DNA of 64,000 nucleotides. Origin: Pavona decussata. Lineage: Eukaryota. The notes beneath the pieces are model-generated. The model saw only the letters and a program-made list of their open reading frames with translations. It was not told the origin of the DNA and did not search any database. A program made the translations under genes and the position numbers. This document shows, piece after piece, positions 3,554-48,525 of the stretch. The stretch covers positions 868,001 through 932,000 of the forward strand of contig CDRNST010000048.1 in assembly GCA_977016875.1 (NCBI GenBank), written 5' to 3'. The first letter of the stretch is position 1; the number at the start of each line of letters is the position of its first letter.

Positions 3554-5072
3554 ATGACGTCGAAACGCTGCCTGAATATACCGCTGACCATCATGCTGTG
3601 TGTACTGCTCTTACTGCTGATCACCTTGTGTTCTGCGAATGACAACAGCAGCAGCAGCAAACCACGTGACAACAAGGTGAGTTTGATGAACAGACTCTAG
3701 GTACAAACTCACAACAGTAAGCTCCCTTCCTGCTGCCCACCAAACAAAAAAGGATTCCAAAAGAAAAGAGTTACTGGTTACACGTCACTTCAAATTGCAT
3801 TTAACAATTTTAATCAGCTACTTGAAATTGTTGCAGTGAACATTATTTAAAATACAATTAAAAAGTTAAAAAATAAAACTCATTCAAAACGCTATTAACA
3901 AACCAATCAAAATATGTACATAACAATGTCCACAACTCAGCGCAAGTAGACTAAAAGAGAAGTTTTCATTTCTCCATTCAGGGTACTCCTCAACAGACGT
4001 CATCATATGGGTCTTGTGGTCACAGCACATGTTTCTGCGCACCAGGTATTCCAGGTATCCCAGGAAGCCCTGGATCCACGGGACCAGCAGGTGCCGCAGG
4101 ATCACCGGGCAATCACGGACCTGAAGGACCCATGGGCCCTCGAGGAAACAAGGGCGATGAAGGCCATAGGGGAAGACGTGGTACTTCAGGCCTTAAAGGT
4201 GCTCAAGGACCCCATGGACCTCCGGGTCCTGCTGGAAAAAAAGGCAAATCAGGTGCTCGTGGTAACCAAGGTCCTCCTGGCCCCAAGGGACAACAAGGAT
4301 CCTCTGGCCAACCAGGTTCACGTGGAAACAAGGGTGATACAGGTGCTCGTGGAATTCAAGGTCCCCCAGGCCCCAAAGGAGCTCTAGGGTCTGTTGTGCG
4401 TAACTGGAAACAGTGCGTTTTTAAGAAGCTGGGGGATGGAAGGGACTCTGGATTGATTAAGGTAACTGAGTTTTGAACTTGACATTAAATCGAAAGCTAA
4501 AAGCAACGAAATTATGTTTCTATGAATACTAACAATACCAACATCCGGTCTGACCTAGTTCAAGGTATAAGCTACTCCGGCCGCCCTATGACGTTGTATT
4601 GCACGGATGTATTTATACGTTTTAGACTGCATGATAATAATGTCTTTATATAAAAGCTGATGGTTTTCATTTCAGACCTGTTGTTGATTGATTTTTTTTC
4701 TCGTTTTTGCAGGAATGTGTTTTCAAGAAGATATCTGCCAAAACAGGGCTGCGTGTCTTCTGGAGTGGAACTCTTCGCATCTATGGCTGCCATGCGTGCT
4801 GCAGGCGATGGTATTTCACCTTCAATGGTGCAGAGTGCTCAGCTCCAGCAGCCATTGATGGCGTAGTGTATATGATACATGGGAATAGCGGCAGAAAGGA
4901 TTTACACCGTGTGAGGCAAATTGAAGGAGTCTGTGAGAAAGTCCACAAAGGCACTGTGCGCGTGGGATTCTGGGTCGGTAATTGTGCTGGTGTGGGATCG
5001 GCAGATGCATACACAGGCTGGAACTCAGTGTCCCGGATCTACGTGGAAGAAGTACCACCCCCACAGGCTTAA
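3554..5072 (+). CDS. CTHRC1: CTHRC1-like secreted short collagen, copy 1 (320 aa); coding exons 3554-3676, 3982-4461, 4713-5072
   Basis: Exon 1 encodes a hydrophobic signal peptide (MTSKRCLNIPLTIMLCVLLLLLITLCSA-NDN). Exon 2 has CGHSTCFC, 39 uninterrupted Gly-X-Y triplets and NWKQC. Exon 3 has CCRRWYFTFNGAECSAPAAIDG...EGVC...DAYTGWNSVSRIYVEE, the CTHRC1 C-terminal signature. Both introns are GT-AG, phase 0, and the joined frame is open. Confidence 0.95.
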
Positions 5073-5781
5073 AAAGAGCAAATTTTCATTTTTTCTTTTT
5101 TTTTAATTTTAAGGTGCTTGGTAGATTCCGAATGCGAACTGAATGATCGCTCAATTCAAAAAGGGTTAGAACCTCAATTTTAGCTAATGATAACCAACTG
5201 GAAGTAAATTTTGACAATCAAAACAGGCGTTTAATTTTTGAAGCTTCAAAGGTGTAAGGAGTAAAGGCAATTTTGTCCGGTAGCAATATATCACGGGAAA
5301 TACGCCAATAAAAGTCAAGTAACAATAAATAATACACTGTGTTGTGTGAATTTCTTACGGTGCTTGTTTCTTTGCTACAGAGTTGGATTTTACAAATTTT
5401 TACTAATTTTTTCTCAAACATGCCCTGAAGAAGAAAGGCCCTGCATTTCGAAATATTGGAAAAATATACTTTCTTGACCATGAAATCAGCCTTGCTCTTT
5501 TTTTTTTTTAAATTATTTGTTCTACAATGTTTTGCTGATTAGATCCTTTACTTCAGGATCTGGTACTTTTATTTTGTCGCGCTGGTCCTTGCAAACACAG
5601 TTAATTACTGGTTTTTACTCAACTTTTTCTTGGATTTTCATAATTCAACGATGGTCATCATGTGATATTTAAAGTGTATATGGCTGTTTTTTTTTTTGCT
5701 TGATAAAATGTGAATGTTGTTCTCGTATGAAAAAAAAAAAAAAAAAAAAAACCCTTGTCAATTTTTCTTCCCCGTCAAAAG

Positions 5782-6048
5782 TCACTTCCGGCTGGGTATA
5801 ATACCGCGTAGGACAGGAGACTGAGGATAGTAGGGTTGTGACGTCAATACAGCAGTTTCTCTAGTCCACAGTTGTTTCATTCTGAGTATTCGACAATCCA
5901 ATACATATTTTCGTCCACAACACAGTTTTCTTCCTCTACATACGAAAAGCAATTGAGGAATAGAGAAATCGTGGGACCTTTATTGACGTCACAGCCCTAC
6001 TATCCCTAGTCTCCCGTCTTACACGGTATTGTACCCAACCGGAAGTGA
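5782..6048. mobile_element. MITE-like element with ~70-bp terminal inverted repeats (degenerate copy ~49232-49468; right-arm remnant ~26200-26228)
   Basis: TCACTTCCGG...GTGACGTCAATA is matched by TATTGACGTCAC...CCGGAAGTGA. Confidence 0.65.
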
Positions 6049-6688
6049 AGTTTCACAATTTTATACGCCTTAAACGCAGCGGCAAAAAAATGAGGATTTA
6101 TTTACATGAAGATTTGATCAGGCAAAAAAAAAATTGTCATATACACTTTAACCTCCCCACACAATTAATCCACAAAAGGAAACGGCGTAGCGTGGATATC
6201 TACTTTGACGTAGTTAATCCACAAAAGTAAAATCTTGGCTACTTGGCTTTTTTAAAACTGTCGTGAATTTTTTTCACTGCACTTTTACTGCACCAGAACC
6301 ACTGTTTAATTTTTCAATCGGATTTTACGGGAAGTAAAACCAACATACCTTTTTCAGTTTTACACTGTTTCTTATCTTATTTATAAATAATAATAGGCAC
6401 GCTAGACTATATCTGAGCTCATATTCGATGATCTCGTTTGGACGATTACGTTCAAAAGTTTCCAGGACCCTTTATTCTCTTCCGCACCACCTCCCTCGCG
6501 AGGACAAGACAGTGGCGTTACAGAAACACCTCAACCCTGACTCACTGGGGCCCAATTTGACTCTGGTTCCCAGCTAGACCGCTTACTCGACTATGATTCG
6601 CCTCTAGGTACCTTGTACAATTTACAGAACTCTTCCCTTCTTATATGAGCGGCGATTGTATAAATGGATCTGCCTGAGGTTTATTTAA

Positions 6689-6994
6689 AGGGACTATGTC
6701 AGCTGGGACACATGCCCAGTAGAGTCCTGTTGAGACTAATTTGCATCCAACTCGTCAAGGGATTTTTCTTTTCCGCTATTGCAAAATCTTTCGAAAATAT
6801 CGCAGCAAACAGCTTCTGTAATTACTAAAGAACGTTTGCAAATGACTTCTTCAGCTAACTTTCCGAAGATGAACGCAAATCAAGCAGATGAAAACAGTTT
6901 CCTGAACTCTCCGACGGTATTTGGAAAAGTTGGGCCAACGATTTCAAAGTGCTTCTCATCGACGCGCGCATGCGCCTTGGGTGACATAGCCCCT
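6689..6994. mobile_element. Non-autonomous TTAA-target DNA transposon (Kolobok-like termini)
   Basis: TTAA|AGGGACTATGTCA...TGACATAGCCCCT|TTAA. The empty site is visible in unit 2 near 27798. Confidence 0.8.
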
Positions 6995-7179
6995 TTAAAG
7001 TCATGTCTCACCTCTGACCAAGAGAAATATACATTCTGTATACATGTATCACAATATGACCGCGAAAGACTGGACCTCAACTTCAGGCAGCATTACTTCC
7101 AGTTTATCTTCCTCTTGCTCATGTTGTCTTTCTCGACTTGATGTCTAAAGGCAGTAAACAAAATTTTTAGCTACTTACC

Positions 7180-8640
7180 ATTTTTTTTGTATTTTAATAG
7201 TTTTTATTCCATTTTATTTAGTTACAGATTCACAAATGAAATCAATACTAGTGCAGAACACACACACATCTACAAAGGACAGTAATTAGGGAGCCACGAC
7301 GCGTTATTATTATGGCCATCATTACTACTATTTTGTTACTTTTTATGAGCACCAAATATCAATCGTGGTGTTTGCTGATGTACTTGTCCCATTTATTTAA
7401 ATGAATAGCTAAGTTATCTGGTTATTTATCTAGTGATTTAGCGATTTTAGTTTCGAGCAGATAAACTACTTTAACTTTTGCAATAAATACTCTGAAGCTA
7501 GGTCTGGTTTCGACAATTCTACAATTACATATGTGCCGTTTTACTATTAACAAAATATGATTCACAAATAAAAAATCTTTACAGTCTAAAATACCAAGCA
7601 TTGTGTTTTTATTTGACAACTGATTTATATTTATATTAAAATCGCTAAACCACTTGATAACTTCCGTCCAGAACTCCCTAGTATAGTGGCAAGATACAAA
7701 GAGATGTTCAAGGGATTCATCTGTTTCTCCACAAAATGAGCATGCTGGTGAAAAAATACCGATTTTACATAGAAAGGCATTCGTAACTATACATCTGTTT
7801 AAAAGCTTGTATTGAAACTTGCGCGATTTTTAGGTTACACAAAATGGAAGACTGTAAATCTTTTACCAGTTTAAATTATCGTTTTCAAATTGAGCAACAT
7901 ATTTTCTCAGACTGGTTGGTTGGATGATAACTCTGTTTCGAAGTTCTTTGTAGATGATTTTTGACTCGGCTTTACTCAGGAGGACCTTTGTGCCATTTAG
8001 AAACAACTGACTCTGGTCATGTTAGATAAAAGGAACAGTGCCAGTACACTAGCAGGTCTTTAAGGATTGACGCCATGCTACTGGAGGGCATCCATCACTG
8101 AAGCAATTTGAAATGCATCCAATAGGGATACGTTTAGCTCTCTTAACTTACACTTCGTAATGAGCTCGTTGTTTTCAGCAATTAAATCCCCTATTCTAAT
8201 TATACCTTTGTTTACTAGTCTGTTGTTGTACACTGTCTTGCCATTGATGCAGACAAATTTATTGCTCCATAAAATAATACAAGCAACATCAGCAGTCTCG
8301 AGTTTGTCGGATTTTGTATGGTTTGCCACAGAACATTCTGTGAAATGTTTAAAGCATTCTTCATAAAAAGTTGGAAGCTTAATGGGCAGCAGCTTTACAT
8401 AAAAGTTACAACTTAAAACAAATTTACCACCGACCGGCTTTAGGTAATGTAGAACAATAGTTTTTCAGCTGCTGCGATAATCACTCGCTAATTTTTTTAC
8501 AGCAGAGTATTCTCTGAGCCTTAATTATGGAATATAGATGTGGAGCTTTAAGTCCACCATCTTCAATATTACCAATAAGCGCCAAACGTTTCATTATCTT
8601 TACCTTTCCAAATGAACTCAAATATTATTTTGTTAACATT
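7180..8640 (-). mobile_element. Degenerate 3' fragment of an L1/Tx1-type LINE ORF2
   Basis: Minus-strand peptides ILWSNKFVCINGK...GIIRIGDL, FQYKLLNR, CSFCGETDESLEHLFVSC (zinc-knuckle) and NHILLIVKRHI, interrupted by stops and frameshifts. Absent from units 2 and 3. Confidence 0.8.
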
Positions 8641-9559
8641 ATTTACAAATTTTTGGTCTATTCAAATCAGACTGGCACGAAAAAAAAAAAAATTGGGATG
8701 ATGAATGTTTTAACAATTTTAATTTTTACCAATTATAGTGAGATCCCTCCACCTTTCCTCTAATGGATTTGATCAACTCGTCAAAATTAAGCTCTCAGTT
8801 AAGGCGGTAATCGTAAGAGACATGTACCCCTAAGAGCTTCACAGATTTCTTGATCTTTATGGCCTTAAAGAAGTGTGCACTGCCCGCTCCGGAGTTCAAA
8901 TGGATACTGCGGATGTGTTTTTGAATTTTCATTTAATCAGAAATTCGAATCCGTTAAAAGGAAGATCACATTAAAATTAGTCAGTTTACCAAGTTTGAGG
9001 TTCTGTCGTTAGATTGCAACCATGTAGAAGGCTTTCAAAAAACTGAAAAATTAGAGATTTTATATGGATTTGGGGGACGCCTTTTCACAATTAGAGAAAT
9101 TTGTAGGAATTTTGGCGACCTTTGACAGCCTGGTTACTACGCAATGGAATATAACCAAACTTGGTAAACTTTGTGATTTTTATGTGATCTTTCTAGATCT
9201 GGCAATAGGGTTCATTTCTTCATATCGCTCAATTTGAACGATTTGTAAACTAGGGCCCATGCCTTTATGAGCTTCGGAACGGGCAATTGGTTGTACTCGC
9301 ATCGCAACCCCTAAAGACTGGATAACGGTACAATGCCATCTGTAACAGTGACTACTTTAGAGAACTTATATATCCAGGACGGCAATCCAAGGAAAATATA
9401 TACGTTCTTCAAAACCTCTGGAATCAAGCCATTTTACAATGAAGTTGTGTCGATAGCGACAAAGAAATGCACCAAACTGTATAACGCAGGCGCAGAACCA
9501 TTGTTTAGCGCAGTAATGTTTTTGGTGACGACCTCGTTGCCATTCTTTCCATGGGTTTG

Positions 9560-9966
9560 AGGAGGATGCCTCATTTTGCTAGTGCGCATACGTTCTGCGC
9601 ATCTCCAGATGGTTCGAGAACCTCTAATCTCTGAAGGACGGTGCCTACTAATTTAAAAGTTTGCGATTGCGCGATTCATGATTATACGGGAAAGGAACTG
9701 ATGTTAGCAAGGTCTATTGAAATAAAAAAAGAAGACTGGTGGTAACCACGCCTTTTTTTTTAGAGATAATCAAGTTTAAATATGGAAGAAATTTCACTCA
9801 TTGTTATGTTAACTTTTTTAACTAAGGCTTTTTAGAGTTATTGCTGCTTTAGTATCTCTGAAAAATGCGTGGTTACCCCAAATTTTCTTTTTAGATTCCA
9901 ATACCCCTTTGTAAGATCTCCATTTTCCACATTGTCATTCTCTGTATTAGGAAACACCGTCCTTAA
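9560..9966. mobile_element. GGACGGTGCC...GGCACCGTCC-family MITE immediately 3' of the LZTR1 stop (paralogues ~32385-32790, ~57570-57981; related remnants ~10433-10740, ~33268-33570)
   Basis: AAGGACGGTGCCTACTAA ... CACCGTCC|TTAA termini. Confidence 0.7.
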
Positions 9967-11826
9967 GGCCTCTTTTATCACGGGTTAACAGCTAGATCCG
10001 TGTCTTTTAAGTAGTCTGCTATAGCATCCAGAATCTCCAGCAACAAATCTCGGCTTAGTCTTCTGAGCTTCGGAGACTTTGCAACCTTCAGTGAGAGAGG
10101 AAAAGAGAAATAGTCAGTTGAATCATGCAGTGTAACATGCAGCTGGTATCTTCTGTTATTTCTCGTGGGAAAAACAAACTATCATGAGTTTTTTTCTTTG
10201 GGCAATTTCTCCACAATAAGCTAAAATACTGAATAAACTTGGAAACATTGCCCCATTTTTTTCAAGTTGCAGTCCATTTTAAACCTGACTATCCGCAGTC
10301 AAAGGTAATAAATACTAGTTTCTGTGCACTAGTAGGGTAAGTAACAAATATGAATCATTATTTTAACGTTTCCATCGATACAAATTTTTTTGCTTATTCA
10401 AAGTGACACTAAAAATAGGTGATACTTCTCCTTTAAGGACAGTACCTCCTAATGCAAAGTCATTTTTGCGCAGTTTATAGAAGGTAAAGGAAGAGGGAAG
10501 AGCTGATCCTCACAAGAACTATTGGAATACAAGAGAAAATGGGAGGGTAGCTACGCTTTTTCAGAGATAATTTTAGAACAACAATAACTCTAAAAATCTT
10601 AAAAATACATAACAATGTAGAGCATTTTCCCAAATTGAAGCTGAATTCTCTTTGAAAAATGCGTGATTACCGTCAATTTTCGTTTTGGATTCGAACAGTC
10701 CTTGCTGAGATCTGCTTTTCCTCCATTTTTCCCCTGAAAGTTTGATTTAAGATGTTCACGGTTTCTGGACTCGCACAGTGAAGCGCAGCAAACGGGAAGC
10801 CCAAGGGAATACCTTATTGGTCTTGTTAGCAAATGAAAGTAGCTCTGTCAAACACAAATTTAAATGAAATTTTAGTCAGTGGTAGTAACTTTCCACTTTC
10901 TACCAAAGTGCCTGAGAACTAGTTACCTTAGTAAAATGTCCGACAACAAGGTCGAGTGCATGCTTCTTCATGTCCGAAGCGCCGATCCTATGAGCCGCTT
11001 CAAGAATCTAATGAAAAATAATAAGAATCGTATAATAAGTTGTTTGTTATCAAGTAGTGAGATCTTGTTTCACCGATTAAAACACCAGATCCCAGTTGTA
11101 CTCGGCTATGCGTGGGAGACGAAGAACAGTTTGAAACAAACTAAATACCCGATGTAAGCGGCAGACTATAAGTTCTGAGTCTTAGTTAGAGAAACCTGAC
11201 ACTTCATTTTTTGAGAAGATATTTGTGGAAAACTGAATGCCTTGTCCTACAACCGTTTCAGAGACAGCGCGCCTTGCCATCCATATATCTTACCCCTTGG
11301 CCTGAGAGGAGAACTAGTGGAGAATGAGGCACCCTGGTATCGTGAAAGCCGCATCCCCCCCCCCCCCCCCCCCTTCCCCAATGGGTATCACACGATCGTC
11401 ATATGTGAGCAAAGTGATTTGGCTTGTAACTCAGAGCTCGCATGAACCAATCCAGCGAAACCTACGTTATGGAGTTTCACGGTAGCCCAATGGATGGGAC
11501 CAAAATTCTCAGTCCGTGACCGTCAAGTCCAAAAATGTTTTTTCAGCCCTCAGCGTTCTTTACAGGGACTCTCTGTATTCGCTAAAATAAACAGTTGTGA
11601 TAGTAATAGCGCCCTTTCCTTACCTCGACTACATTTTCAAACGAGACATTCATTTCCAGATTCTGTTTACAGAAGGCCTGAAAACGTTATCGAGTAATTT
11701 CATTAAATAACATCAAGAAGAAAACAGCTGTTAGAAAAGACTAAATTGTAAACCCTGTAAGGGATTATACAGACCTGTAGTCGATTGTTAGTGAAGCCAA
11801 AGAAATAAGGAGCTGACAGAAGATAT

Positions 11827-13112
11827 CTTGCATACAAGGTCAAGGAAAATTTCTTAATTTGATACCTTAAGACTATAATTAAGAAATTAGTTACGAAATT
11901 AGTGAGCGCGAGTTCAATGGAGCAGGCTTGTTATTACGAAACAATGAGTTCAGTTTTTCTGGACTTAGGGTGGAAGTTTTGAAATTACAATCTCGCATAC
12001 AAGATAAACTTCGATCTCCTTCATACTATATCATCATTTCAGCATATGATCAAAGGTAAAATTTACAGTGGAAGACTTATGTAAATTTTACCTTTTGCAC
12101 GACTTCACGTAATCATAAATATTCACGGCACGTGAACGGCAGTGGAATACACTGGATAAACAAAATAAAACTCATGTTCGAAGAAAGCAAATAATGACTG
12201 AAACTTGACCAAGATTCAGCCTTCTTATTTAACACCGGTTTCAGTTCTTAAGCCTAAAACTTGCTTGAATATCGAAAAGAATTGTTACTCTAACCGCTTG
12301 TAATTTGACAGAAAAATCTGTCAGGGTATTTTAAAGATATCTCGATTGATGCAAAGTAGGAACTTTTTCATTCATCCGCGCTTTATTTTAACTGTTTTTA
12401 AACATAAATATCTTAAAATCGGAGACACCCATGAAGCTTAATATACATTTAGAATGGTTTGCTATGAAGAATGACCTTTTAATAGTAAAGACAAGGTGTC
12501 AAGTTTTATTTTGCCGTAGATATTGGTGAAAAATGCGGGAATAAACAAAATCACCCCAGAAAAAAAATCGATTCATTATTTACTTGAAAACGCTCTTACA
12601 GATTTTTTCTAATTTCGCCTACAAGTTGTCTAGATTGAATAGTTTAAATCCCTAAAGTTTCGTCATAAAGTGTCTGACTAGATTTCGAGATAATCGACAA
12701 TGTTTAAAAAGAGAGGCTATGCGCTTCCGTTGCTATGGTAATGGCTGTTGCTTGGAAACCGATGAGAAAACTTTGATCATATGTTGAAATGATGATGTAG
12801 TATGAAGGAGATCGAAGTTTATCTTGTGTGCGAGATTGTAATTTCATAATTTCCACCGTAAGTCCAGAAAAACTGCCGCGAGCCTCCTTAAGGTTATGCA
12901 ATTGACGTTAATCCGAGACTTTAAATCTAACAGAGTTAATTGAAAAAGTTGTGCACTGGAAGTGCAGATGAACCCCTCTTCAAGGATATCTTCGCAAAAC
13001 GAAACAACATACGTTGAATACCTTAAAAAAGTTGTTCCGTGCAAATACCTTTTTTATCTAACAACATTTCTTCAATCAAGTGCATTTAAGAAACGTAACT
13101 CACGAAGGATAC
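11827..13112 (-). other. U12-type GT-AG intron in LZTR1 copy A (also 34659-35962 in B and 59249-59835 in C)
   Basis: The 5' site is CT|GTATCCTT. A branch site TTTCCTTGAC (11848-11839) lies just upstream of the AAG acceptor with no polypyrimidine tract. The join restores ...EDSL-YLL in frame. Confidence 0.92.
11951..12887. mobile_element. Non-autonomous Kolobok-like element with ~120-bp TIRs inside the U12 intron (left tip deleted)
   Basis: The arms at ~11951-12055 and ~12771-12887 are inverted copies. The right end is CCTCC|TTAA. Confidence 0.85.
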
Positions 13113-14595
13113 AGTGAGTCCTCAGGTGGCATAGACACATCTCCATGATAAATATAAAGAAGGAGAGAGTTGAAAGCTTCTCGCGAAGGAATTGTCTCAC
13201 CAATGGTAATCTTTATGAGGAAAAAAGACGGTTAACGGTTTACGCGTGTGCTCAACAAAACAAACACAAATGAAACAATAACAAAACATAAATCAGAACT
13301 CAATGAGAAAACAATGGAACTTATTATGATGAAGGCGATGTCTGCATCAAGTGTCGCAAAGAGTAAGTTGGTGTATAATTCTCCCTCCCCTTCTCCCACT
13401 CCCCACCCCTTACGTTTGCTGGTGCCTATTTAACACCTGGGCTCAGTTGTTCGATAGTCGGTAAGCATTAAACCGAGAGAAAACAGTTAGGGAAGTGGTC
13501 AAATAAAACTACTATTTTCAAGTGGGGCCCACCAAACCACAAAATAGATCAGGTGGTCTCTGCCTGCACCCCTTCTTCCTCAACCTGTAAGAAGGACAAT
13601 GAGATTCACACATCACTTTTCTTGTTTGTCTAGCAATGCTGTCTCTTTCTAGCTTAATATTTCTGTGCAAACGCAAATTTTAAAGCCATTAAAACTTTGT
13701 CGGTAATGTTCATCAGGTAGGTGGGGTCTTCCATAACCCCTCTATCCCAGACAAGGTGAGTCATCTTAGCCTGTTTCAAGCGTTCAGACGGTTGGCGAGC
13801 AGCGACAATTGGCGAGGGAACGATTAAAGTAATTCTACCTACCGTGACTGTGTTGTTCTCTGGCATAAATGATCGAAACATTGCCTCAAAATAACTAAAC
13901 AGAAAGAAAAAGAGCAAGGTTCAAAAACTAAATGTGTATGGTATGTAATCCTACTCAAAACTTTCAGGGTGACGAGACAATACACACCAGAACATGACAA
14001 GATTAAAAGGAATTTTGTCGAAAACAAAACTATACTTTAGTAATCACTATAATAGGCACAGTTTAGTTTTCGTCTCATATGTTTCTTGTATTCATGGTAA
14101 TAAGAACATGTAATAAAGAAGTTATTCCCTCAGCCAACCTACCTACACCTTGCAGCCAAGACCGCCTAGAAGGAAAAAATGGTAGATAGTCATTCACCTC
14201 ATAAATCTTTTACAAGAGGCAAACATAGGCACGCATCGCGCACAGAACTGATGGCGTTTTCTGAAAAGTGGTCTATTGTTGAAGAGTCCGTCAAAGCTCA
14301 AAGATGATAAAATGTTCGTGAGTTTGTGAGTTAACTAACTCATTTCACGATTTACTAAAACACGTTTCAAGTCTTTTATGTGGAGACAAGTCGGCAATAG
14401 GTGTCTTTGTTTTCTCTTTGAATGCGTGATATTACCTTTTGGTTCCTAAAACATTTTTTTTAGCAAATCATAAAATGATTCAGTAAACTGACAACCGACT
14501 CACAAGAAAAACTTACAGGCTTTTAAAGCTCTCAAAGTAAAAATCTTATATTAACGGACTTTTATGATTTTGTCTTTTCGTTTGACCGCGGTTAA

Positions 14596-14747
14596 NNNNN
14601 NNNNNNNNNNNNNNNNNNNNNNNNNNNNNNNNNNNNNNNNNNNNNNNNNNNNNNNNNNNNNNNNNNNNNNNNNNNNNNNNNNNNNNNNNNNNNNNNNNNN
14701 NNNNNNNNNNNNNNNNNNNNNNNNNNNNNNNNNNNNNNNNNNNNNNN
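14596..14747. other. Assembly gap (others at 37456-37602 and 53505-53702)
   Basis: Runs of N. Confidence 1.
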
Positions 14748-15646
14748 ATGATGCCTATTATTTGATGTAAATGTCAGCTGACCACCCAGTATAATCTGTG
14801 AGTACAATTCATGCAAATAAACAAAACAACACGCTCGGTCAGTCAAATGTCTATTAAGAAGAAATTTTCTCCGGTCACGCAGAGAAGTGAATCAAAATCC
14901 TATGAGTTTCAGTTGGCTGAACATGGTTAAAAGTGATCACGACGTTTGTGTTTTAAGTATTACACACTGTTGAACTGAAATTTGGCAGGGTTATTGTAAT
15001 GGAATAGTTACTTTAAACAAACATTTTCGACACACACACACAAAAATAAAGGTTCTGGGATAGTGATACTCGTTTTGCCTTGCCAACGAACCACCAACGA
15101 GTGCCGTTAACTGACAAAACATACATCTGCTACATTATTTTTTATTTATATCTTCTTTGTGGAGACGCCATTGTTAAAGCGTGCTTTGACAAAAAGACAG
15201 AGCTGTTCCATTACAGTCATTACATTTCCAAAATGAAGGTGTGTCTTCGGACGTATTTCTTTGTAACTTAGGGTGGACGCCAAAAATTTCGGCAACCTGT
15301 TTAACCGGATGAGCAAATACTCACGTACTTTATGTGCCCCGATTGCTTCGCCGTCCACCATCAGCGTGATGTCATGAAAGTCTTGGCCGCGCGCTCCCTG
15401 AAGAAAGTCCAACATGTCTTGTTGTAAGGTTTTCTCTGCAAAATATAAGAAGAAACTGCAAGGTGAGCGAGAACATGGTAAAATGTCTGCAGTTTGAAAA
15501 ATAGCGTTCTCTAGCGTACTTGGATGCGTCGACCGACACTGGTTGTCTCCTGGAATGAGGGCACTTGCCTAAAAAAGGAAACGAAAACTGATTTTAATTA
15601 AAATATAATATTACCTCTTTCATTCCTGATACAAACTTCAGTTAAT

Positions 15647-16003
15647 AGGGACCTTATGAAAACACGACGGCGACGGCAACGGCAACGTGAAAAAACAAAA
15701 GATTTAATGAGCTAAACAATGGCTCCGCACGTGTGTTAAAAAGTTAGTACATCATCGGCCACACAACGCCGTGAAATAACCAAATACAAAGTTTAAAGGA
15801 GAACGTAAACACCAGACGGTAACTGTTTCGTTGTTTTTTTCCTTACTTGAACACCGTTGTAACTAACCATGCTCCTGGTTATTGAGTTTACACTGTACAA
15901 GTTGAACGGGTTGGAATAATCACAAAGTAGATCAGATAACGCGAGTATTTATTTCTAAGTGACATTTCGGTTGACTCTGCCGTCGTGCTTTCGTAAGATG
16001 CCT
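15647..16003. mobile_element. MITE, PIF/Harbinger-like with a 3-bp AAT TSD (paralogue ~38502-38858)
   Basis: AAT|AGGGACCTTATGAAAACACGACGGC...GCCGTCGTGCTTTCGTAAGATGCCT|AAT. Confidence 0.75.
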
Positions 16004-16009
16004 AATGTA

Positions 16010-16745
16010 ACGTGATCTTAACTTTCGATTCTGTAAACGACATCCTGAAGTGTGACCATTCAAATGAAAGCTTTTGAGCAATACTCTCCTCTAGTGCTGT
16101 TGATTATGCTGCACAAGGTGGTTCTAGCTTTTGGGTCTGTGGGCGAAATTTTAAAGTGTGACCACTCAAATGCGAATGCATGCTACTGAGCAGTACTTTC
16201 CTGTGGTGCTGTTTACTACGTTGAACAAGGTGGTTCTAACTTTTGAGTCTCTCTATGAAATCCTAAAGTACGACCATTCAAATGAAAGCTACTGAGCAGT
16301 ACTTTCCGGAAGTTTGGTTAATAATGCTGAACAAGGTGGTTCTAACGTTTGAGTCGTTGGGTGAAATCCAGAAGTGTGACCATTCAAATGAAAGCTACTG
16401 AGCAGTACTTTCCGGAAGTTTGGTTAATAATGCTGAACAAGGTGGTTCTAACGTTTGAGTCTTTGTGTGAAATCCTGAAGTGTGACCATTCAAATGAAAG
16501 CTATACTGAGCAGTACTTTCCCGAAGTTTGGTTAATAATGCTTAACAAGGTGGTTCTAACGTTTGAGTCTTTGGGTGCAATCCTGAAGTGTGATGATTAA
16601 AATGAAACCCATTGAGCAGAGCGTTCCTGAATCTGCAGATAAAATCCTAAACCGCTGTGACCATTCAAAAGAAGGCTCCTGAGCAGTGCCTTCAGTGGTT
16701 TTAGCTTTACGTCCGTGAAAAAAATTCTAAAGTGCCACCATTCAA
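16010..16745. repeat. ~106-bp tandem repeat, about 6-7 units, in an LZTR1 intron
   Basis: The TGACCATTCAAATGAAAGCTACTGAGCAGTACTTTCC motif recurs at 16053, 16159, 16271, 16377, 16483 and 16591. Confidence 0.9.
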
Positions 16746-19700
16746 ACGATATTTATGAAAGCCATGCACTTCCTCCATGTCAATAAATAGTTCAGCGTAT
16801 TACCTGTGGAACTTGCCGCCTTCTAATTATCTCCACCATGAGTTTTTGAGGCACAGATTCAAAGTTCTTGCTCATGATGATATTGTTGTAGTTTGCTTCT
16901 CGAACAATGAAACGAAGGCAGAAATCCTGCAACAAAAAACACAACAATTAGCCAATTGGCCAATTTATCTGATCAACTCAATTGGTACAGCCGAATTCTC
17001 GTGTTTCACTTTGCCATCGACAAGGCAACGCAGTTTCTTTTGGGAAAAAAAACTGCTTCACAAATGAAAACGTGTTATGATCAGCTGGTCGCATAGTCTG
17101 TGTATCACTGTTGGATTCCAGTAAGCTCTTTGTAAGATCCGAAAGATACCTTTGTTTCAGGAAGTACCGCCCTTAAATAAATTTGTTTTGTAAATATTTA
17201 TCAAACCTTGAGCGGGTTCAGCTGTAGCCGGGCGGCACTGTCCAGGGCCACAAGAACGTTTTCCTGAGAGATTGAAGACTCGATATACTGCACACACAGT
17301 GCCTCCAAAGAACCAATCTCAAGCTGTAGAAATAAGGGCAGACCTTTAGAAAGGACATGAAACGAACAAACGGAACTATATACTACATACTTTTAGGAGT
17401 CGAGATAGCTCCAAATCGGATTGCTTCAGGAATTATTTTACGCTCAACTTCTTGAACATTTCTATGTGAGTGCTACCATGTGACTGATGCGATGGATGTT
17501 TTTTTTTCATGCAATTTTGATAAGTTTCCAACGATATCTGATTTGCAGAGCGGAAAAACGTTGTGCGCATATCAGTTCGCGGGCTAACGTGATCCGTGAA
17601 TAAGGAGCAAGCGCGATTTTTAACGAGATCGATAATAAAATCCCTGCAAAAAAAAAAAAAAATAGAAAATCCACTATGGATAAAAATTATGTACTTTGGC
17701 AAACCCAGTAATTAAAGATTAACTATATCCTTAGCCTTAAATATTCAGGGATTTGCTTCTGTAGCCGCATTTTGTAAAAAGGTCCATAACAATAATAGAC
17801 CTGTATAGGCGATTTGTTTACACACCGCGGGAACATTGAGGGCTTTAAAGTCTTTAAAGTTTAAGAAGCCATAAGAAAATTAATGCACAGCAAGGATACA
17901 TCTGCAGCTATCTTTTTTGTGAGAAAATTATCGCTTCTTACCGAGATACCTGCGGTAGCATAGTAATTTTTTTAAAATAACAACAATTTAATTGCCGCCA
18001 TTTTTGGAAATTTTGGTGCCCCGCGTTCGTCCCCGCGCTTGCGCAGAGTTCGCGTTTGCGTTTTTCGGCTTTTAATATCTGACTATGACCGCACGTATGC
18101 CGCTAACCCTGACCTAGAAATTTTTCCTGCTACAAAAAAGACTAACGCAATTCTTTAATTTTCAGTAAAACTTAATACTGAAATAAGAATAATTTACCTT
18201 TAGAGCTAATCTGTAAACATCCATGATTAGACTGATGTCCTGCGAACCTTGACAATCTGTTGAAACACACAGTATTGCTTTAAAAATACGTGTTTTTGCT
18301 ATCAACAAGCCACACGCTCCTTTAAAACTTCAAGGGAACAAACGTTTGAAGTAAAATTTATTTACTAGTAAAGCATGTTTTCAATGATAGTTGAGGAAAT
18401 GGTTGTAAGACTTTGCAAGCGATATAGAAGAACCAAAATTGATGATGGAAAACCTGCAACGGTACATAATATCCTTAAGGTGGGTTGGATTGGCTGCATT
18501 CTGGAATAACAATACACACTTCGATCACTAAAAGTCCCACATTAAAGTTATCTGGACTGCACGGAATGCAAACTCGCTCTTGGATATCGTGTGCCATCAA
18601 ACGGATGAACTTCAAGGAGTGAAAAATTTTCGATGTCTACGGACGAACCGCGTCCATTTCTGTCGTAAAACTTCATCCTTAGGGAAATGGTGCATCGACA
18701 CACATTGTTCGGGGCCCCGTAAGCGCAATTCGTTCCCCCTTTCTTCTCAATTGCATTTTTCCTTCGAAGCCATAGTTGCCGCGTTTTATGATTTTATCAC
18801 AGTTTCACACCATGTCACTGACATGTCACGCGCGAAAAGGAGCCATTTTCAAGCCGCTACATCGGATCTTCAACCTCGAAAAAGTTGGTTTTAGAAAGGC
18901 CGCAGGTTACTTCAATCGATCAGGGCTCATTTAAAACACAATAAATCACTAAAAATTACAAAAACAAAAATTCATTTCATATGCACTTTAAGGCAAATTA
19001 AAATCACTAAAGCAAACAAACGACTCGCTCTGTGAACATTCGCTGACGTGTTAAACTAACTCTTCCGCATCCACGAGGGGAAAATTTACCCGACTGATAA
19101 TACAAAATTACTTACACTGTTGGTGACTTGGAAGTCGAGATTGACCAAAAAAAACAAACAAAAAAAAAAAATAATAATAATAGAAAACAGGGAAGCTTTC
19201 ACATCTCACAATAGAACGAAGGCTACACTGCTTCTATTGTGACTGCTACTGTGACAAGTAAAACAAAGTGGAAATTAATTTGCTGACTGTATTGAAATAA
19301 TTAATTTGATGAACACAGTACAGGTTCAACTGACATGGTTTGACCCCAATTGGTTTTGATTTGCTGAAATTTGACATTTCTTTAGCTACTCGCTATGGTT
19401 TTCTCAGAATTCCATCTAAATTTAGACAAACCTAAAACTTAAGAAGACATCCCATTGGACATTTTGAAGACTTTAAACAAATTGTTTTAGCCAAAAATAT
19501 TTCTCGTTAGAATGACTCTGATCTGGAAGAATTTTTAAATATTTGTTCTCTCAAAAACTTGATCTTACGAGAGACTCATTATATGCAAAGAAAACAAAAG
19601 AGAAAAGTGACACACGCTTTACTTGAGCTTCGAACGATTGCTTGGATAATATGACAGCACAGTTTTGTATTCGTTTTCCTCACTGGTACCAAAGGAGAGG

Positions 19701-20339: not shown

Positions 20340-20720
20340 CTAGGTAATTTCATAAGAAAACCAAGTTTTACATCGCTCATGTCAGTAATTTTAAAAGAAA
20401 TTCTTTTTCAAAAAGACGAATCAATAAACGATATACAGTGAAACCGTTGGCCACGTTGGCGTTTCAAATTAAGTAAACACTCTTTTGAAGCTGTGGTCAC
20501 AATTAACTTTTTTGCAAATTAGCTCGAAACCAAGCATTTTTACATCGCTACATGCTTGATTTAAAAGAAATTTCATCTCAATAAGATAAAACAATGTACA
20601 AGATAAAAGTTAACCATGCTCGCGTTTCAAAATTAGTAAATACAAACCAGTCTTTTATGCCCCCCAATTAATAAGCTTTTGTAAACAGTCTTTTAGCAGG
20701 TCGAAACCAAGCAAATGGAT
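20340..20720. repeat. Degenerate ~120-bp tandem repeat upstream of CTHRC1 (also ~1-350 and ~43250-43720)
   Basis: Recurring TCGAAACCAAGCATTTT.ACAT.GCTA...AAAAGAAATT...TCTCAA.AAGA motif. Confidence 0.55.
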
Positions 20721-35737: not shown

Positions 35738-38700
35738 TTAAGGTTATGCAATTGACGTTAATCCGAGACTTTAAATCTAACAGAGTTAATTGAAAAAGTT
35801 ATGCACTGGAAGTGCAGATGAACCCCTCCTCAAGGATATCTTCGCAAAACGAAACAACATACGTTGAATACCTTAAAAAAGTTGTTCCGTGCAAATACCT
35901 TTTTTATCTAACAACATTTCTTCAATCAAGTGCATTTAAGAAACGTAACTCACGAAGGATACAGTGAGTCCTCAGGTGGCATAGACACATCTCCATGATA
36001 AATATAAAGAAGGAGAGAGTTGAAAGCTTCTCGCGAAGGAATTGTCTCACCAATGGTAATCTTTATGAGGAAAAAAGACGGTTAACGGTTTACGCGTGTG
36101 CTCAACAAAACAAACACAAATGAAACAATAACAAATCATAAATCAGAACTCAATGAGAAAACAATGGAACTTATTATGATGAAGGCGATGTCTGCATCAA
36201 GTGTCGCAAAGAGTAAGTTGGTGTATAATTCTCCCTCCCCTTCTCCCACTCCCCACCCCTTACGTTTGCTGGTGCCTATTTAACACCTGGGCTCAGTTGT
36301 TCGATAGTCGGTAAGCATTAAACCGAGAGAAAACAGTTAGGGAAGTGGTCAAATAAAACTACTATTTTCAAGTGGGGCCCACCAAACCACAAAATAGATC
36401 AGGTGGTCTCTGCCTGCACCCCTTCTTCCTCAACCTGTGAGAAAGACAATGAGATTCACGCATCACTTTTCTTGTTTGTCTAGCAATGCTGACTCTTTCT
36501 AGCTTAATATTTCTGTGCAAACGCAAATTTTAAAGCCAATAAAACTTTGTCGGTAATGTTCATCAGGTAGGTGGGGTCTTCCATAACCCCTCTATCCCAG
36601 ACAAGGTGAGTCATCTTAGCCTGTTTCAAGCGTTCAGACGGTTGGCGAGCAGCGACAATTGGCGAGGGAACGATTAAAGTAATTCTACCTACCGTGACTG
36701 TGTTGTTCTCTGGCATAAATGATCGAAACATTGCCTCAAAATAACTAAACAGAAAGAAAAAGAGCAAGGTTCAAAAACTAAATGTGTATGGTATGTAATC
36801 CTACTCAAAACTTTCAGGGTGACGAGACAATACACACCAGAACATGACAAGATTAAAAGGAATTTGTCGAAAACAAAACTATACTTTTAGTAATCACTAT
36901 AATAGGCACAGTTTAGTTTTCGTCTCATATGTTTCTTGTATTCATGGTAATAAGAACATGTAATAAAGAAGTTATTCCCTCAGCCAACCTACCTACACCT
37001 TGCAGCCAAGACCGCCTAGAAGGAAAAAATGGTAGATAGTCATTCACCTCATAAATCTTTTACAAGAGGCAAACATAGGCACGCATCGCGCACAGAACTG
37101 ATGGCGTTTACTGAAAAGTGGTCTATTGTTGAAGAGTCCGTCAAAGCTCAAAGATGATAAAATGTTCGTGAGTTTGTGAGTTAACTAACTCATTTCACGA
37201 TTTACTAAAACACGTTTCAAGTCTTTTATGTGGAGACAAGTCGGCAATGGGTGTCTTTGTTTTCTCTTTGAATGCGTGATATTACCTTTTGGTTCCTAAA
37301 ACATTATTTTTAGCAAATCATAAAATGATTCAGTAAACTGACAACCGACTCACAAAAAAAACTTACAGGCTTTTAAAGCTCTCAAAGTAAAAATCTTATA
37401 TTAACGGACTTTTATGATTTTGTCTTTTCGTTTGACCGCGGTTAAGGTCACGTGCNNNNNNNNNNNNNNNNNNNNNNNNNNNNNNNNNNNNNNNNNNNNN
37501 NNNNNNNNNNNNNNNNNNNNNNNNNNNNNNNNNNNNNNNNNNNNNNNNNNNNNNNNNNNNNNNNNNNNNNNNNNNNNNNNNNNNNNNNNNNNNNNNNNNN
37601 NNATGATGCCTATTATTTGATGTAAATGTCAGCTGACCACCCAGTATAATCTGTGAGTACAATTCATGCAAATAAACAAAACAACACGCTCGGTCAGTCA
37701 AATGTCTATTAAGAAGAAATTTTCTCCGGTCACGCAGAGAAGTGAATCTAAATCCTACGAGTTTCAGTTGGCTGAACATGGTTAAAAGTGATCACAACGT
37801 TTGTGTTTTAAGTATTACACACTGTTGAACTGAAATTTGGCAGGGTTATTGTAATGGAATAGTTACTTTAAACAAACATTTTCGACACACACACACAAAA
37901 ATAAAGGTTCTGGGATAGTGATACTCGTTTTGCCTTGCCAACGAACCACCAACGAGTGCCGTTAACTGACAAAACATACATCTGCTACATTATTTTTTAT
38001 TTATATCTTCTTTGTGGAGACGCCATTGTTAAAGCGTGCCTTGACAAAAAGACAGAGCTGTTCCATTACAGTCATTACATTTCCAAAATGAAGGTGTGTC
38101 TTCGGACGTATTTCTTTGTAACTTAGGGTGGACGCCAAAAATTTCGGCAACCTGTTTAACCGGATGAGCAAATACTCACGTACTTTATGTGCCCCGATTG
38201 CTTCGCCGTCCACCATCAGCGTGATGTCATGAAAGTCTTGGCCGCGCGCTCCCTGAAGAAAGTCCAACATGTCTTGTTGTAAGGTTTTCTCTGCAAAATA
38301 TAAGAAGAAACTGCAAGGTGAGCGAGAACATGGTAAAATGTCTGCAGTTTGAAAAATAGCGTTCTCTAGCGTACTTGGATGCGTCGACCGACACTGGTTG
38401 TCTCCTGGAATGAGGGCACTTGCCTAAAAAAGGAAACGAAAACTGATTTTAATTAAAATATAATATTACCTCTTTCATTTCTGATACAAACTTCAGTTAA
38501 TAGGGACCTTATGAAAACACGACGGCGACGGCAACGGCAACGTGAAAAAACAAAAGATTTAATGAGCGAAACAATGGCTCCGCACGTGTGTTAAAAAGTT
38601 AGTACATCGTCGGCCACACAACGCCGTGAAATAACCAAATACAAAGTTTAAAGGAGAACGTAAACACCAGACGGTAACTGTTTCGTTGTTTTTTTCCTTA

Positions 38701-38864: not shown

Positions 38865-39600
38865 ACGTAAACTTAACTTTCGATTCTGTAAACGACATCC
38901 TGAAGTGTGACCATTCAAATGAAAGCTTTTGAGCAATACTCTCCTCTAGTGCTGTTGATTATGCTGCACAAGGTGGTTCTAGCTTTTGGGTCTGTGGGCG
39001 AAATTTTAAAGTGTGACCACTCAAATCCGAATGCATGCTACTGAGCAGTACTTTCCTGTGGTGCTGCTTACTACGTTGAACAAGGTGGTTCTAACTTTTG
39101 AGTCTCTGTATGAAATCCTAAAGTACGACCATTCAAATGAAAGCTACTGAGCAGTACTTTCCGGAAGTTTGGTTAATAATGCTGAACAAGGTGGTTCTAA
39201 CGTTTGAGTCGTTGTGTGAAATCCAGAAGTGTGACCATTCAAATGAAAGCTACTGAGCAGTACTTTCCGGAAGTTTGGTTAATAATGCTGAACAAGGTGG
39301 TTCTTATGTTTGAGTCTTTGTGTGAAATCCTGAAGTGTGACCATTCAAATGAAAGCTACTGAGCAGTACTTTCCCGAAGTTTGGTTAATAATGCTAAACA
39401 AGGTGGTTCTAACGTTTGAGTCTTTGGGTGCAATCCTGAAGTGTGATGATTAAAATGAAACCCATTGAGCAGAGCGTTCCTGAATCTGCAGATAAAATCC
39501 TAAACCGCTGTGACCATTCAAAAGAAGGCTCCTGAGCAGTGCCTTCAGTGGTTTTAGCTTTATGTCCGTGAAAAAAATTCTAAAGTGCCACCATTCAAAC
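38865..39600. repeat. Same 106-bp tandem repeat in unit 2
   Basis: Near-identical to 16010-16745. Confidence 0.9.
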
Positions 39601-45969: not shown

Positions 45970-46320
45970 AAATGCTCGGCTAATTTTGGAAGCCAACATG
46001 TTATGTGCTTTAAAACGTGTCTAGGACAAGTGTTTACTTTCAAGTCAATAGAGATGATTTAACCAATAGGAGTGCTTGGCTTATTTTGGAACCCAACATG
46101 TTATGAGCTTTAAAACGTGTTACTTTTTAGCCCACAAATAATTAACCAATAGGAGAGCTTCGCTTATTTTGGCACCCAACATGTTGTCAGCTTCAAAACG
46201 TGTCTAAAACAAGATTTTTACTTACAAGTCAACAAACAAAAAGTATAAAAGCTTCTGTAATAGTGAGAGGTGAATCAGTTTTCCTTCAGATGGTTGAAGC
46301 CGCACAAGCAAGATTGGTAG
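45970..46320 (+). promoter_or_regulatory. Candidate CTHRC1 copy 3 promoter (2 intact CCAAT units, TATAAAAG at 46244, TCAGTT at 46275)
   Basis: Canonical TATA about 33 nt upstream of the initiator A, followed by the same splice donor as in copies 1 and 2. Confidence 0.55.
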
Positions 46321-47001
46321 GTAATAGAACTATAGTTTTCCCCTTTACGTTTCTATAGTAAATTACATTTTTTTCTTGACAGAATTGAACTGAGTTCTTG
46401 TGCAATTAATTTGAAGATTTGTTAGCAAAATTCTTAATTCTTAATTCTTGCTAAATTAAATTTAGCAAGTACTTGAATTAGTCGTTTCTCGTGAAAATGT
46501 TTAGGTCGCTAAATTGAAGAACATTCCATAATGAGTTTAACTTAATTATGATAACAGAAATTAAATTACCAATAAATAGGAGTAATAACGCTTCAATCAC
46601 TTTATATCTTCATGATCAAAGTCAAAGGCAGCGGCTGATATTTAAAAGTTATTATCTGATATAACACAAGAATCGACGACTTAGTACCAACGGTTATGTG
46701 GTTGCTTTGCGTGTCTAATAATTAATTACAACCAAACACAAACTCAAAGTCAGCGGCTGATATTTAAAAGTTATTATCTGATATAACACAAGAAATCGAT
46801 GACTTAGTACCAACGGTTATGTGGTTGGTTTGCGTGTCTGATAATTACTTTAATTATTGTAACAAGGAAGCTCAATATCAAAAGCCTCATCATTTTCCCG
46901 TTTGGGCTCCTTGTAGTCCTTGTACTTTGATCATTTGTAGTTACTTATCTTTTTTCGTGGTGAATAAAACTGAGTTCGAGAATTCAATGTTCACAGATTG
47001 A

Positions 47002-48525
47002 ATGATGTCGAAACGTTGCCTGAATATACCGCTGACCATCATGCTGTGTGTACTGCTCTTACTGCTGATCGCCGTGTGTTCTGCGAATGACAACAGCAGC
47101 AGCAACAAACCACGTGACAACAAGGTGAGTTTGATGAACAGACTCTAGGCACAAACATACAACAGTCAGCTCCTTTGCTGCTGCCCACCAAAACAAAATA
47201 GGATTAAAAAAAGGAAAGAGTTACTGGTTACACTACACTTCAAATTGCATTTAACAATTATAATCAGCTACTTGAAATTGTTCCAGTGAACAACATTTAA
47301 AATACAATTAAAAAGTTAAAAAATAAAACTCATTGAAAACGCAATTAAGAAACCAATCAAAATATGTACATAACAATATTCAGAACTCAACACAAGTAGC
47401 ATAAAAGAGAATTTTTAACTTATTCATTCAGGGCACTCCTCAACAGACGTCATCATATGGGTCTTGTGGTCACAGTACATGTTTCTGCGCACCAGGAATT
47501 CCAGGTATCCCAGGAAGCCCTGGACCCGCAGGACCAGCAGGTGCCGCGGGATCACCCGGTAATCACGGACCTGAAGGACCTATGGGCCCTCGAGGAAACA
47601 AGGGCGATGAAGGCCCTAGTGGAAGACGAGGTACTTCAGGCCTTAAAGGTGCTCAAGGACCCCGTGGACCACCGGGTCCTACTGGAAAGAAAGGCAAAGC
47701 AGGTACCCGTGGTAACCAAGGCCCCCCTGGCCCCAAGGGACAACAAGGATCCTCTGGCCCACCAGGTTCACTTGGAAACAAGGGTGATACAGGTGCTGGT
47801 GGAATTCAAGGTCCCCCAGGGCCCAAAGGAGCTCTAGGGTCTGTTGTGCGTAACTGGAAACAGTGCGTTTTTAAGAAGCTGGATGATGGAAGGGACTCTG
47901 GATTGATTAAGGTAAAAGCTGAATTTTGAACTTTATATTAAATCCAAAGCTAAAGGCAACGTTATTACGTTTCTATGAATACTAAGAATACTAACATCCA
48001 GTCTAACCTAGTTCAAGGTATAACTTACGCTGGCCGCCTTATGACGTTGTTTCGCACGGATGCATTTATACGATTAAACTGCACGACTATAATATCTTTA
48101 TATGAAAGCTCATGGTTTCCATTTCAGTGCTGTTGTTGATTGATTTTTTTCCCTCGTTTTTGCAGGAATGTGTTTTTAAGAAGATATCTGCCAAAACAGG
48201 GCTGCGTGTCTTCTGGAGTGGAACTCTTCGCATCTACAACTGCCATGGGTGCTGCAGACGATGGTATTTCACCTTCAATGGTGCAGAGTGCTCAGCTCCA
48301 GCAGCCATTGATGGTGTAGTGTACATGGTATATGGAAGTAGCGCCAAAAAGAATTTACATCGAGTGAGGCAAATCGAAGGAGTCTGTGAGAAAGTCCACA
48401 AGGGCACTGTGCGTGTGGGATTCTGGGTCGGTAATTGTGCTGGTTATGGATCGGCAGATGCATACACAGGCTGGAAGTCAGTGTCCCGGATCTACGTGGA
48501 AGAAGTATCACCCCCACAGGCTTAA
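47002..48525 (+). CDS. CTHRC1: CTHRC1-like, copy 3 (320 aa); exons 47002-47124, 47432-47911, 48166-48525
   Basis: Same structure and exon lengths (123/480/360) as copy 1, with intact splice sites and an open frame. Confidence 0.95.

Follow-up and report, generated by a model that had tools for sequence, protein, structure and literature searches.

Three CTHRC1-like genes in a tandem repeat of the coral Pavona decussata: members of a very large family with a conserved head scaffold and putative selected loops

The DNA described here, hereafter "the window," is a stretch of 64,000 nucleotides from the reef-building coral Pavona decussata (NCBI GenBank assembly GCA_977016875.1, contig CDRNST010000048.1, positions 868,001 to 932,000 of the forward strand). 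It holds three intact CTHRC1-like genes, A, B, and C, each of three exons and all on the + strand; the variable sites in their C-terminal heads, and the very large family to which they belong, are the subject of this article. By self-alignment, the 64 kb consist of about 2.8 copies of a tandem segmental repeat of 21-23 kb, with one of these genes in each unit and 80-97% identity between units in the non-coding DNA. The exons, in positions of the window, are as follows.

3554-3676, + strand: gene A exon 1; start codon, hydrophobic signal-like segment, and a stretch rich in N-x-S/T; open reading frame (ORF) with GT donor
3982-4461, + strand: gene A exon 2; Cys-rich C-x5-C-x-C, 39 G-X-Y triplets, and the first 24 head residues
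4713-5072, + strand: gene A exon 3; remainder of the CTHRC1_C head (strands B' to H) and stop codon
24182-24304, + strand: gene B exon 1; ORF with GT donor
24616-25185, + strand: gene B exon 2; 49 G-X-Y triplets, then the start of the head with KNLND
25439-25798, + strand: gene B exon 3 (copy L007), stop codon included
47002-47124, + strand: gene C exon 1; ORF with GT donor
47432-47911, + strand: gene C exon 2; 39 G-X-Y triplets, then the start of the head with KKLDD
48166-48525, + strand: gene C exon 3 (copy L008), stop codon included

All introns of the three genes are GT..AG and both are in phase 0. Pfam searches were run exon by exon. Exon 3 of gene A matches PF25815 (CTHRC1_C) at 7.2e-44 (149.8 bits against a cut-off of 27) over profile positions 25-137, and the last 24 codons of exon 2, which hold strand A and the first variable patch (KKLGDG), match positions 1-24 of the same profile. 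The second intron therefore lies at the conserved position described for the 5' end of the Cthrc1 C-terminal domain (Leclere et al. 2020, Genome Biol Evol, PMC7058181). It falls between head residues 24 and 25 in phase 0 in all 27 of the copies compared, with GT..AG borders in 26 and GC..AG in one.

Exon 2 of gene A also matches PF01391 (Collagen; E 7.3e-21). Its triplets run without interruption, 39 in A and C and 49 in B; the C-x5-C-x-C segment stands directly before them, and they end about five residues ahead of strand A, after which the head follows. The ten additional triplets of B (30 residues) come from an in-frame tandem duplication of 90 bp (24760-25025 vs 24850-25115). Another paralogue, L032, has 59, such that stalk length steps by ten: 39, 49, or 59. 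As read from the sequence, the product of exon 1 starts with Met and basic residues and continues with a hydrophobic run, about 17 residues long, and then small residues, and so is signal-like; a sub-cut-off Pfam match of this exon to "Conotoxin" (E 0.003) was taken as a chance resemblance between signal peptides. The layout proposed in a first-pass annotation made from the letters alone, a Cys-rich N-segment followed by a collagen stalk and a globular head, is thus the one found, with a head whose predicted fold is of the C1q/TNF type (see below). As a side observation, the otherwise open copies L003, L006, and L033 each have one Gly of the collagen part exchanged for Val, Glu, or Asp, which breaks the run of triplets.

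That annotation had also drawn attention to clustered, radical differences among the three heads. All 12 of the peptide motifs that it quoted are present on the + strand in the expected places, its codons are exact, and its count is correct: 17 of the 143 head residues vary among A, B, and C, two encoded by exon 2 (head sites 13 and 15) and 15 by exon 3 (35, 44, 48, 49, 52, 79, 80, 82, 84, 85, 87, 116, 118, 128, and 139). This clustering exceeds chance. Over the whole head, the synonymous divergence (dS) among the three genes is 0.135-0.17, near the divergence of the flanks. The signal exon was rightly described as near-invariant (1-5 of 123 nucleotides differ); the collagen part of exon 2 is more variable than was implied, with many substitutions besides the duplication in B. 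The signal exon is in fact more uniform than a neutral expectation, with dS of 0-0.04 where intron 1 has diverged by about 20%, and although the numbers are small, this could be homogenisation by conversion or constraint at the nucleotide level.

The three genes are a small part of a much larger set. A six-frame search for the head exon in the whole 602 Mb assembly yielded at least 150 scored matches from 187 candidates, of which 137 contain no stop. The window's own contig (C48 in our numbering) carries about 27 copies in two arrays of opposite orientation, and further clusters occur on contigs C486, C56, C51, C3, C99, C10, C176, C97, C49, and elsewhere. The published number for corals is up to 31 copies (PMC7058181), and our literature search did not find a higher count. 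A word search recovered, as named relatives, CTHRC1-like proteins from Acropora, Montipora, and Oculina that are 77-82% identical. The head columns that vary among A, B, and C are also hypervariable in about 22 further paralogues of the same contig and in five other clusters.

Gene A (copy L001) has two near-copies, one 94 kb and the other 192 kb downstream, with about 98.5% identity over 3.3 kb. This implies that the array either contains a recent higher-order repeat with a unit of about 95 kb or includes haplotypes that are in part uncollapsed.

C48:965412-968768: near-copy of gene A (L002)
C48:1063685-1067041: near-copy of gene A (L003)

Several members of the C48 arrays are broken (L004, L040/L041, L043, L044, L024, L026, L031, and L042), by stops in exon 2 or the head, by a frameshift, or by having no exons 1-2 within 4.6 kb upstream; in all, apparent pseudogenes make up roughly between a quarter and a third of the copies on C48.

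For the codon analyses, the exon 2 tail and exon 3 were concatenated, and the heads of 22 distinct paralogues from the window's contig were aligned. Site models were fitted with our own GY94-F3x4 code, which matches the M0 likelihood of IQ-TREE exactly. The overall ratio of non-synonymous to synonymous rates (dN/dS, or omega) of the head is 0.50. Within it there is a small class of codons under positive selection, 5.7-5.9% of the head at an omega of 4.6-5.0, which is supported by the likelihood-ratio tests (LRT) on this contig: 72.9 for M2a against M1a, 70.2 for M8 against M8a, and 78.8 for M8 against M7, the comparison that the first-pass annotation had proposed. If only the 16 fully intact genes are used, the LRT is 54.3. 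Posterior probabilities exceed 0.95 at head sites 17, 48, 52, 79, 84, 118, and 124, to which other runs add 15 and 44. In gene A, the four patches that hold these and their neighbouring hot sites are located as follows.

4432-4440, + strand: patch 1, hot codons at head 15 and 17 (posterior 0.77-0.99 and 0.91-0.99, respectively)
4770-4796, + strand: patch 2, RIYGCHA, head 44, 48, 49, and 52 (posteriors 0.99-1.0)
4872-4901, + strand: patch 3, MIHGNSGRKD, D-E loop, head 79, 80, 82, and 84
4983-5012, + strand: patch 4, CAGVGSADAY, F-G loop and strand G, head 116, 118, 119, and 124

The selected class was found again outside this contig. Applied to exon 3 of other clusters, the site models gave an LRT of 42.3 for C486, 49.3 for C56, and 20.7 for C3, and the hot columns that recur across clusters are 44, 48, 49, 52, 79, 80, 82, 84, 118, 124, and 128. 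The columns of patch 2 are hot in C486, C56, C3, and C10 as well. A further check took the 17 sites as a fixed class and applied them to 17 paralogues that the first-pass annotation had not seen: omega is 1.85 at these sites and 0.32 elsewhere (LRT against omega = 1 of 4.4, p = 0.036). The synonymous rate at the 17 sites relative to the rest is 1.00; there is therefore no local excess of exchange or mutation. At the other extreme, about 14 synonymous state changes fall in the framework at head 90-113, against about 2 non-synonymous ones, and the conserved stretches of the head are under purifying selection rather than merely young.

Where these sites lie on the protein depends on a structural model. 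Gene A exon 3 alone gave an AlphaFold2 (AF2) model with a predicted local distance difference test score (pLDDT) of 87. For the full head we modelled P0049, a natural coral protein of 142 residues (86% identical, head residues 2-143), with the paralogue rows as its alignment, and obtained a pLDDT of 84.6 and a predicted template modelling (pTM) score of 0.79. In VIA-align this model aligns end to end with domains of the TNF/C1q type at Z 8-11.8: the PLTL lectin at 11.8 (124 of 134 residues), Pgp3 at 11.3, the BclA head at 10.0, EDA-A1 at 9.6, C1q at 9.1, and collagen VIII NC1 at 8.8. Z is at least 8 for 30 chains, and almost all of the 31 best-scoring ones have the TNF/C1q-type fold. Foldseek searches of PDB gave weak E-values with a consistent list of matches, including the BC2L-C N-domain (BC2L-C-N) at a template modelling (TM) score of 0.5. 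The head is thus predicted to be a ten-strand jelly-roll of the C1q/TNF type, and the cnidarian Cthrc1 head has been modelled before as C1q/NC1-like, with BclA among its HHpred matches (PMC7058181). At the level of sequence, Pfam at E <= 1 on the exons of gene A returned CTHRC1_C plus a sub-threshold domain of unknown function, and no C1q or TNF domain; PDB sequence searches with exon 3 and with a profile returned no relatives and no C1q or TNF chain.

Strands were assigned by chain order, in head numbering:

6-13: strand A
24-30: strand B'
36-48: strand B
53-61: strand C
73-78: strand D
87-98: strand E
104-114: strand F
about 119-125: strand G
129-138: strand H

Those who wish to align fragments of this family should be aware that the first two head strands, WKQCVFKK (4405-4428) and KECVFKK (4710-4733), form an internal repeat, which misleads MAFFT on fragments.

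On this assignment the hot sites 15 and 17 directly follow strand A, 44-52 span the end of strand B and the B-C loop, 79-86 and 116-119 belong to the D-E and F-G loops, respectively, and 124 is part of strand G. The B-C, D-E, and F-G loops are the most variable elements in six of six clusters, with the D-E loop (patch 3) highest in each of them, and C-D and E-F rank with the least variable elements. Non-synonymous state changes per site amount to 2.32 in B-C, D-E, and F-G vs 0.80 in B'-B, C-D, E-F, and G-H (p = 0.013), with synonymous state changes equal between the two sets. As successive loops of a jelly-roll alternate between its ends, B-C, D-E, and F-G would share one end.

Which end this is can be reasoned from topology. 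In C1q and TNF both chain termini are at the base, and strand H runs down to the base; the F-G, D-E, and B-C loops would thus be at the base beside the stalk, and C-D and E-F at the apex. We consider it probable that the variable loops lie on the stalk side and not at the apex, provided that the ten-residue segment after strand A makes the A' traverse. The first-pass annotation had asked whether the four patches form one distal surface. Patches 2 to 4 would share one end of the sandwich, but by topology this is probably the stalk end and not the distal one, and patch 1 and sites 124 and 128 are probably elsewhere than the B-C/D-E/F-G end. A variable region on the lower, outer side of the head is more likely. 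TNF ligands bind their receptors in the lower half of the trimer, through the D-E and A-A'' loops, which we take to be the equivalents of patches 3 and 1. The coral head is presumably a trimer too, judging by its collagen stalk and by the near-invariance of the assigned inner-sheet strands.

It is also necessary to consider recombination. The pairwise homoplasy index (PHI) test gives p = 0.001 and 47% of the informative site pairs are incompatible, so recombination is present. With four segment-specific trees the LRT is 37.6 and omega 4.3. The most direct view of the process comes from the 98.5%-identical copies L001, L002, and L003, whose heads differ at eight nucleotides, seven of them in the hot codons 48/49, 52, and 118. 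These differences include two runs of three adjacent bases (TAT GGC vs TAC AAC; GTG vs TAT), and each variant state also occurs in other paralogues. This points to short-tract gene conversion, which would move ready-made loop variants between paralogues and in that way leave young, near-identical copies differing almost only at hot codons. The multi-base codon swaps listed in the first-pass annotation are real, but such conversion would be their simplest account and fits better than serial point mutation. Conversion redistributes variants, however, and cannot create the five to seven residues seen at single columns.

Our preferred reading, to which we give a probability of about 0.7, is that A, B, and C, all intact, belong to a very large tandem CTHRC1 family that combines a conserved scaffold with a few putative binding loops under selection. 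Each gene would encode a signal-like N-terminus, a short Cys-rich segment that possibly staples the chains together, a stalk of 39-49 triplets, and a head of 143 residues with a TNF/C1q jelly-roll. The assigned inner-sheet strands (A, C, F, and H) and the C-D and E-F loops, near-invariant and under purifying selection, would let the paralogues remain compatible with one another in folding and trimerisation. Some 6-8% of the head codons, with an omega of about 4-5 and placed just behind strand A, in three loops (B-C, D-E, and F-G), and in strand G, would supply the diversity, and new variants at these hot spots would be passed between paralogues by short-tract conversion. The outcome would be a germline repertoire of secreted trimeric heads with one scaffold and many different binding surfaces. 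The variable loops may form the surface that meets the ligand, and the near-invariant stalk junction together with the inner-sheet strands would permit mixed trimers.

Several observations weigh against this reading and should be kept in view. Taken over the whole head, dN/dS between the three genes is 0.27-0.35. In C10 and C51, two of the five other clusters, no class with omega > 1 reaches significance. The cross-validated test of the 17 sites is only modest in significance, at p = 0.036. Relative branch lengths were held fixed, so that our site models approximate those of PAML, and recombination may inflate site-model tests, as tracts shorter than the four segments remain. A tree-free count of distinct codon states, in which synonymous states saturate, fails correction for multiple testing, with a nominal p < 0.05 only at sites 17, 48, 52, 84, and 124. 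The lower variability of the inner-sheet strands (A, C, F, and H) relative to the outer-sheet strands is a trend only (p = 0.29). Lastly, the few coral papers that mention CTHRC1 report it as raised at the tips of growing Acropora branches and in gastrodermal cells that remodel matrix, and do not tie it to defence.

What the loops would bind is a separate matter. The first-pass annotation had proposed soluble pattern-recognition or matrix-binding proteins. In its pattern-recognition form, the heads may serve coral innate immunity or symbiont recognition in the manner of C1q, collectins, ficolins, or the expanded C1q-domain families of bivalves, with loops that bind patterns on microbial or algal surfaces. 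The defence-collagen architecture, the recurrent positive selection on loops in several tandem clusters, and the sugar-binding, TNF-like bacterial lectins among the best structural matches (PLTL at Z 11.8; BC2L-C-N) would all suit such a role. It fits less well that the heads are not members of the C1q family by sequence, that the variable loops are probably away from the apex that C1q uses, and that the coral literature ties CTHRC1 to branch tips and matrix-remodelling cells. We regard this role as possible, but tentative and on the unlikely side.

Those same expression sites, in Acropora branch tips and matrix-remodelling gastrodermal cells, would suit proteins of the matrix, of adhesion, or of the skeleton, or modulators of the Wnt/planar cell polarity (PCP) type, with loops sub-functionalised for endogenous partners such as collagens, the skeletal organic matrix, or receptors, and with no arms race. 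The genes are true CTHRC1 members, down to the conserved intron position, and the ten-triplet steps in stalk length (39, 49, and 59) are also in keeping with this. Endogenous partners, however, seldom drive an omega of 4-5 at the same columns in many young duplicates, the youngest copies differ almost solely at hot codons, and more than 150 copies is far above the known families of matrix modulators. For these reasons we think it unlikely that such partners explain the loops.

It should also be asked whether the diversification is adaptive at all, since unconstrained loops might give an omega > 1 as an artefact of gene conversion and decaying copies. The significant PHI test, the broken members of the arrays, the two clusters without significance (C10 and C51), and the corrected distinct-state count all lean this way. 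Neutral loops, though, are expected at an omega of about 1 and not 4-5, and M8 is preferred over M8a, in which omega is fixed at 1, with an LRT of 70. The signal is kept with intact genes only and with segment-specific trees, the synonymous rate at the 17 sites equals that of the rest (1.00), and there is replication in three independent clusters. We therefore hold a purely neutral origin to be quite improbable.

An assembly artefact, in which uncollapsed haplotypes or a mis-joined repeat would turn alleles into paralogues, could draw on the gaps at homologous points of two units and on the gene A copies at 94 and 192 kb, whose divergence, at 98.5% identity, is within the range of coral heterozygosity, but we reject it as very improbable, since the three units differ by 3-20% in non-coding DNA and by 20-29% in introns, which is too great for alleles, gene B has its 30-residue insertion, the more than 150 copies are spread over many contigs, and the near-identical copies of gene A number three, not two.

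Comparison with known systems helps to set the preferred reading, a conserved scaffold with selected loops, in its context. Defence collagens (C1q, collectins, and ficolins) and the C1q-domain-containing (C1qDC) proteins of bivalves have a Cys-rich N-segment, a stalk, and a jelly-roll head, with large tandem expansions and variable surface loops. The coral genes share the layout, the presumably trimeric head, and the tandem expansion, and match C1q at Z 9.1, but their heads have no C1q membership by sequence, and by topology their variable loops would be at the end of the termini, not at the apex. The best structural matches, PLTL of Photorhabdus, the N-domain of BC2L-C of Burkholderia, and TNF, are only 6-12% identical in sequence; PLTL and BC2L-C have no collagen stalk, and a common fold proves neither homology nor like function. 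BclA of the Bacillus anthracis exosporium does combine a collagen-like stalk with a TNF/C1q-like head (Z 10.0 over the whole domain). Unlike the coral family of paralogues, it is a bacterial structural surface protein of a single gene, and we know of no diversifying paralogue family of BclA.

Vertebrate CTHRC1 is a secreted Wnt/PCP co-factor and regulator of collagen deposition with about 12 triplets. It has the same order of parts and the same Pfam domain (CTHRC1_C) as the coral genes, which are instead massively duplicated, with 39-59 triplets and fast loops. Vertebrates have one slowly evolving CTHRC1 gene (PMC7058181), and tandem Cthrc1 duplicates on one scaffold are known in Acropora, Nematostella, and Clytia (PMC7058181). 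The same paper describes the tandem duplication, conserved intron, and C1q/NC1-like head that we see here, and thus the family, its duplication in cnidarians, and the C1q-like fold are already published. It differs in reporting up to 31 copies in corals vs at least 150 head exons in the Pavona decussata genome, and it has neither a test of positive selection nor hypervariable loops, where we find an omega of about 4-5 at recurrent loop columns as well as gene conversion. Neither in that paper nor in our literature searches did we find this family size, the recurrent selection on loop columns, the gene-conversion signature, or the assignment of the loops.

Work on CTHRC1 has dealt almost exclusively with the single vertebrate gene and its regulation of Wnt/PCP signalling and fibrosis. 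In this coral, the domain serves as scaffold for a secreted gene family that ranks among the largest of a reef builder, and an orphan head gains a candidate binding surface in the equivalents of the D-E and A-A'' loops of TNF. The result is a large, testable candidate family for the recognition of microbes, symbionts, neighbours, or matrix, and if its ligands are foreign, it would join the short list of diversified invertebrate recognition families. A bolder proposal, which we offer as a doubtful one, is a combinatorial germline repertoire in which more than 150 tandem genes, mixed trimers of co-expressed paralogues made possible by an invariant trimer interface and stalk register, and selected and converted loops would let the coral discriminate among microbes, symbionts, or neighbouring colonies. 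Were it true, invertebrates would have a recognition system that has so far been overlooked, analogous to the fibrinogen-related proteins (FREPs) of snails or the C1qDC proteins of bivalves.

Gene A is found in public RNA runs, including some labelled as coral metatranscriptomes. RNA contigs, which do not distinguish gene A from its 98.5%-identical copies, cover its three exons and leave out the sampled intron bins, 3720-3783 and 4488-4679. Runs X1 and X3 contain the joint 3674->3980, which with the cut moved by +2 is a GT..AG junction at 3676|3982, that is, exon 1 to exon 2; loose contig ends run from the end of exon 2 to the start of exon 3 and back, as fits the second joint. The GTG->TAT variant at 4992-4994 is also present in the RNA contigs. 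These contigs show presence and splicing, not expression level. In runs X8 and X10, RNA contigs lie within intron 1 of gene A (3784-3975); retention of the intron, use of an alternative exon, or transcription of the opposite strand or of a paralogue could account for them.

Three assembly gaps interrupt the window, and no CTHRC1 exon or reading frame enters the first two of them.

14596-14747: N run in repeat unit 1, outside the CTHRC1 genes
37456-37602: N run in repeat unit 2, outside the CTHRC1 genes
53505-53702: third gap, at a point with almost no extra sequence in unit 2 (30292/30304)

The first gap is 9.5 kb past the stop codon of gene A and the second 11.7 kb past that of gene B, and each is 9.4 kb upstream of the following start codon, of gene B and gene C, respectively. 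They are at the same point of units 1 and 2, as their flanks align with each other (14595<->37445 and 14748<->37603), which hints that both units contain a common element that assembles poorly. A Pfam search with ten long ORFs located between genes A and B (6779-22406) gave no match. Beyond the first two gaps, both units carry a minisatellite with a period of about 106 bp and about 80% identity between copies, at 16019-16631 in unit 1 and 38874-39484 in unit 2.

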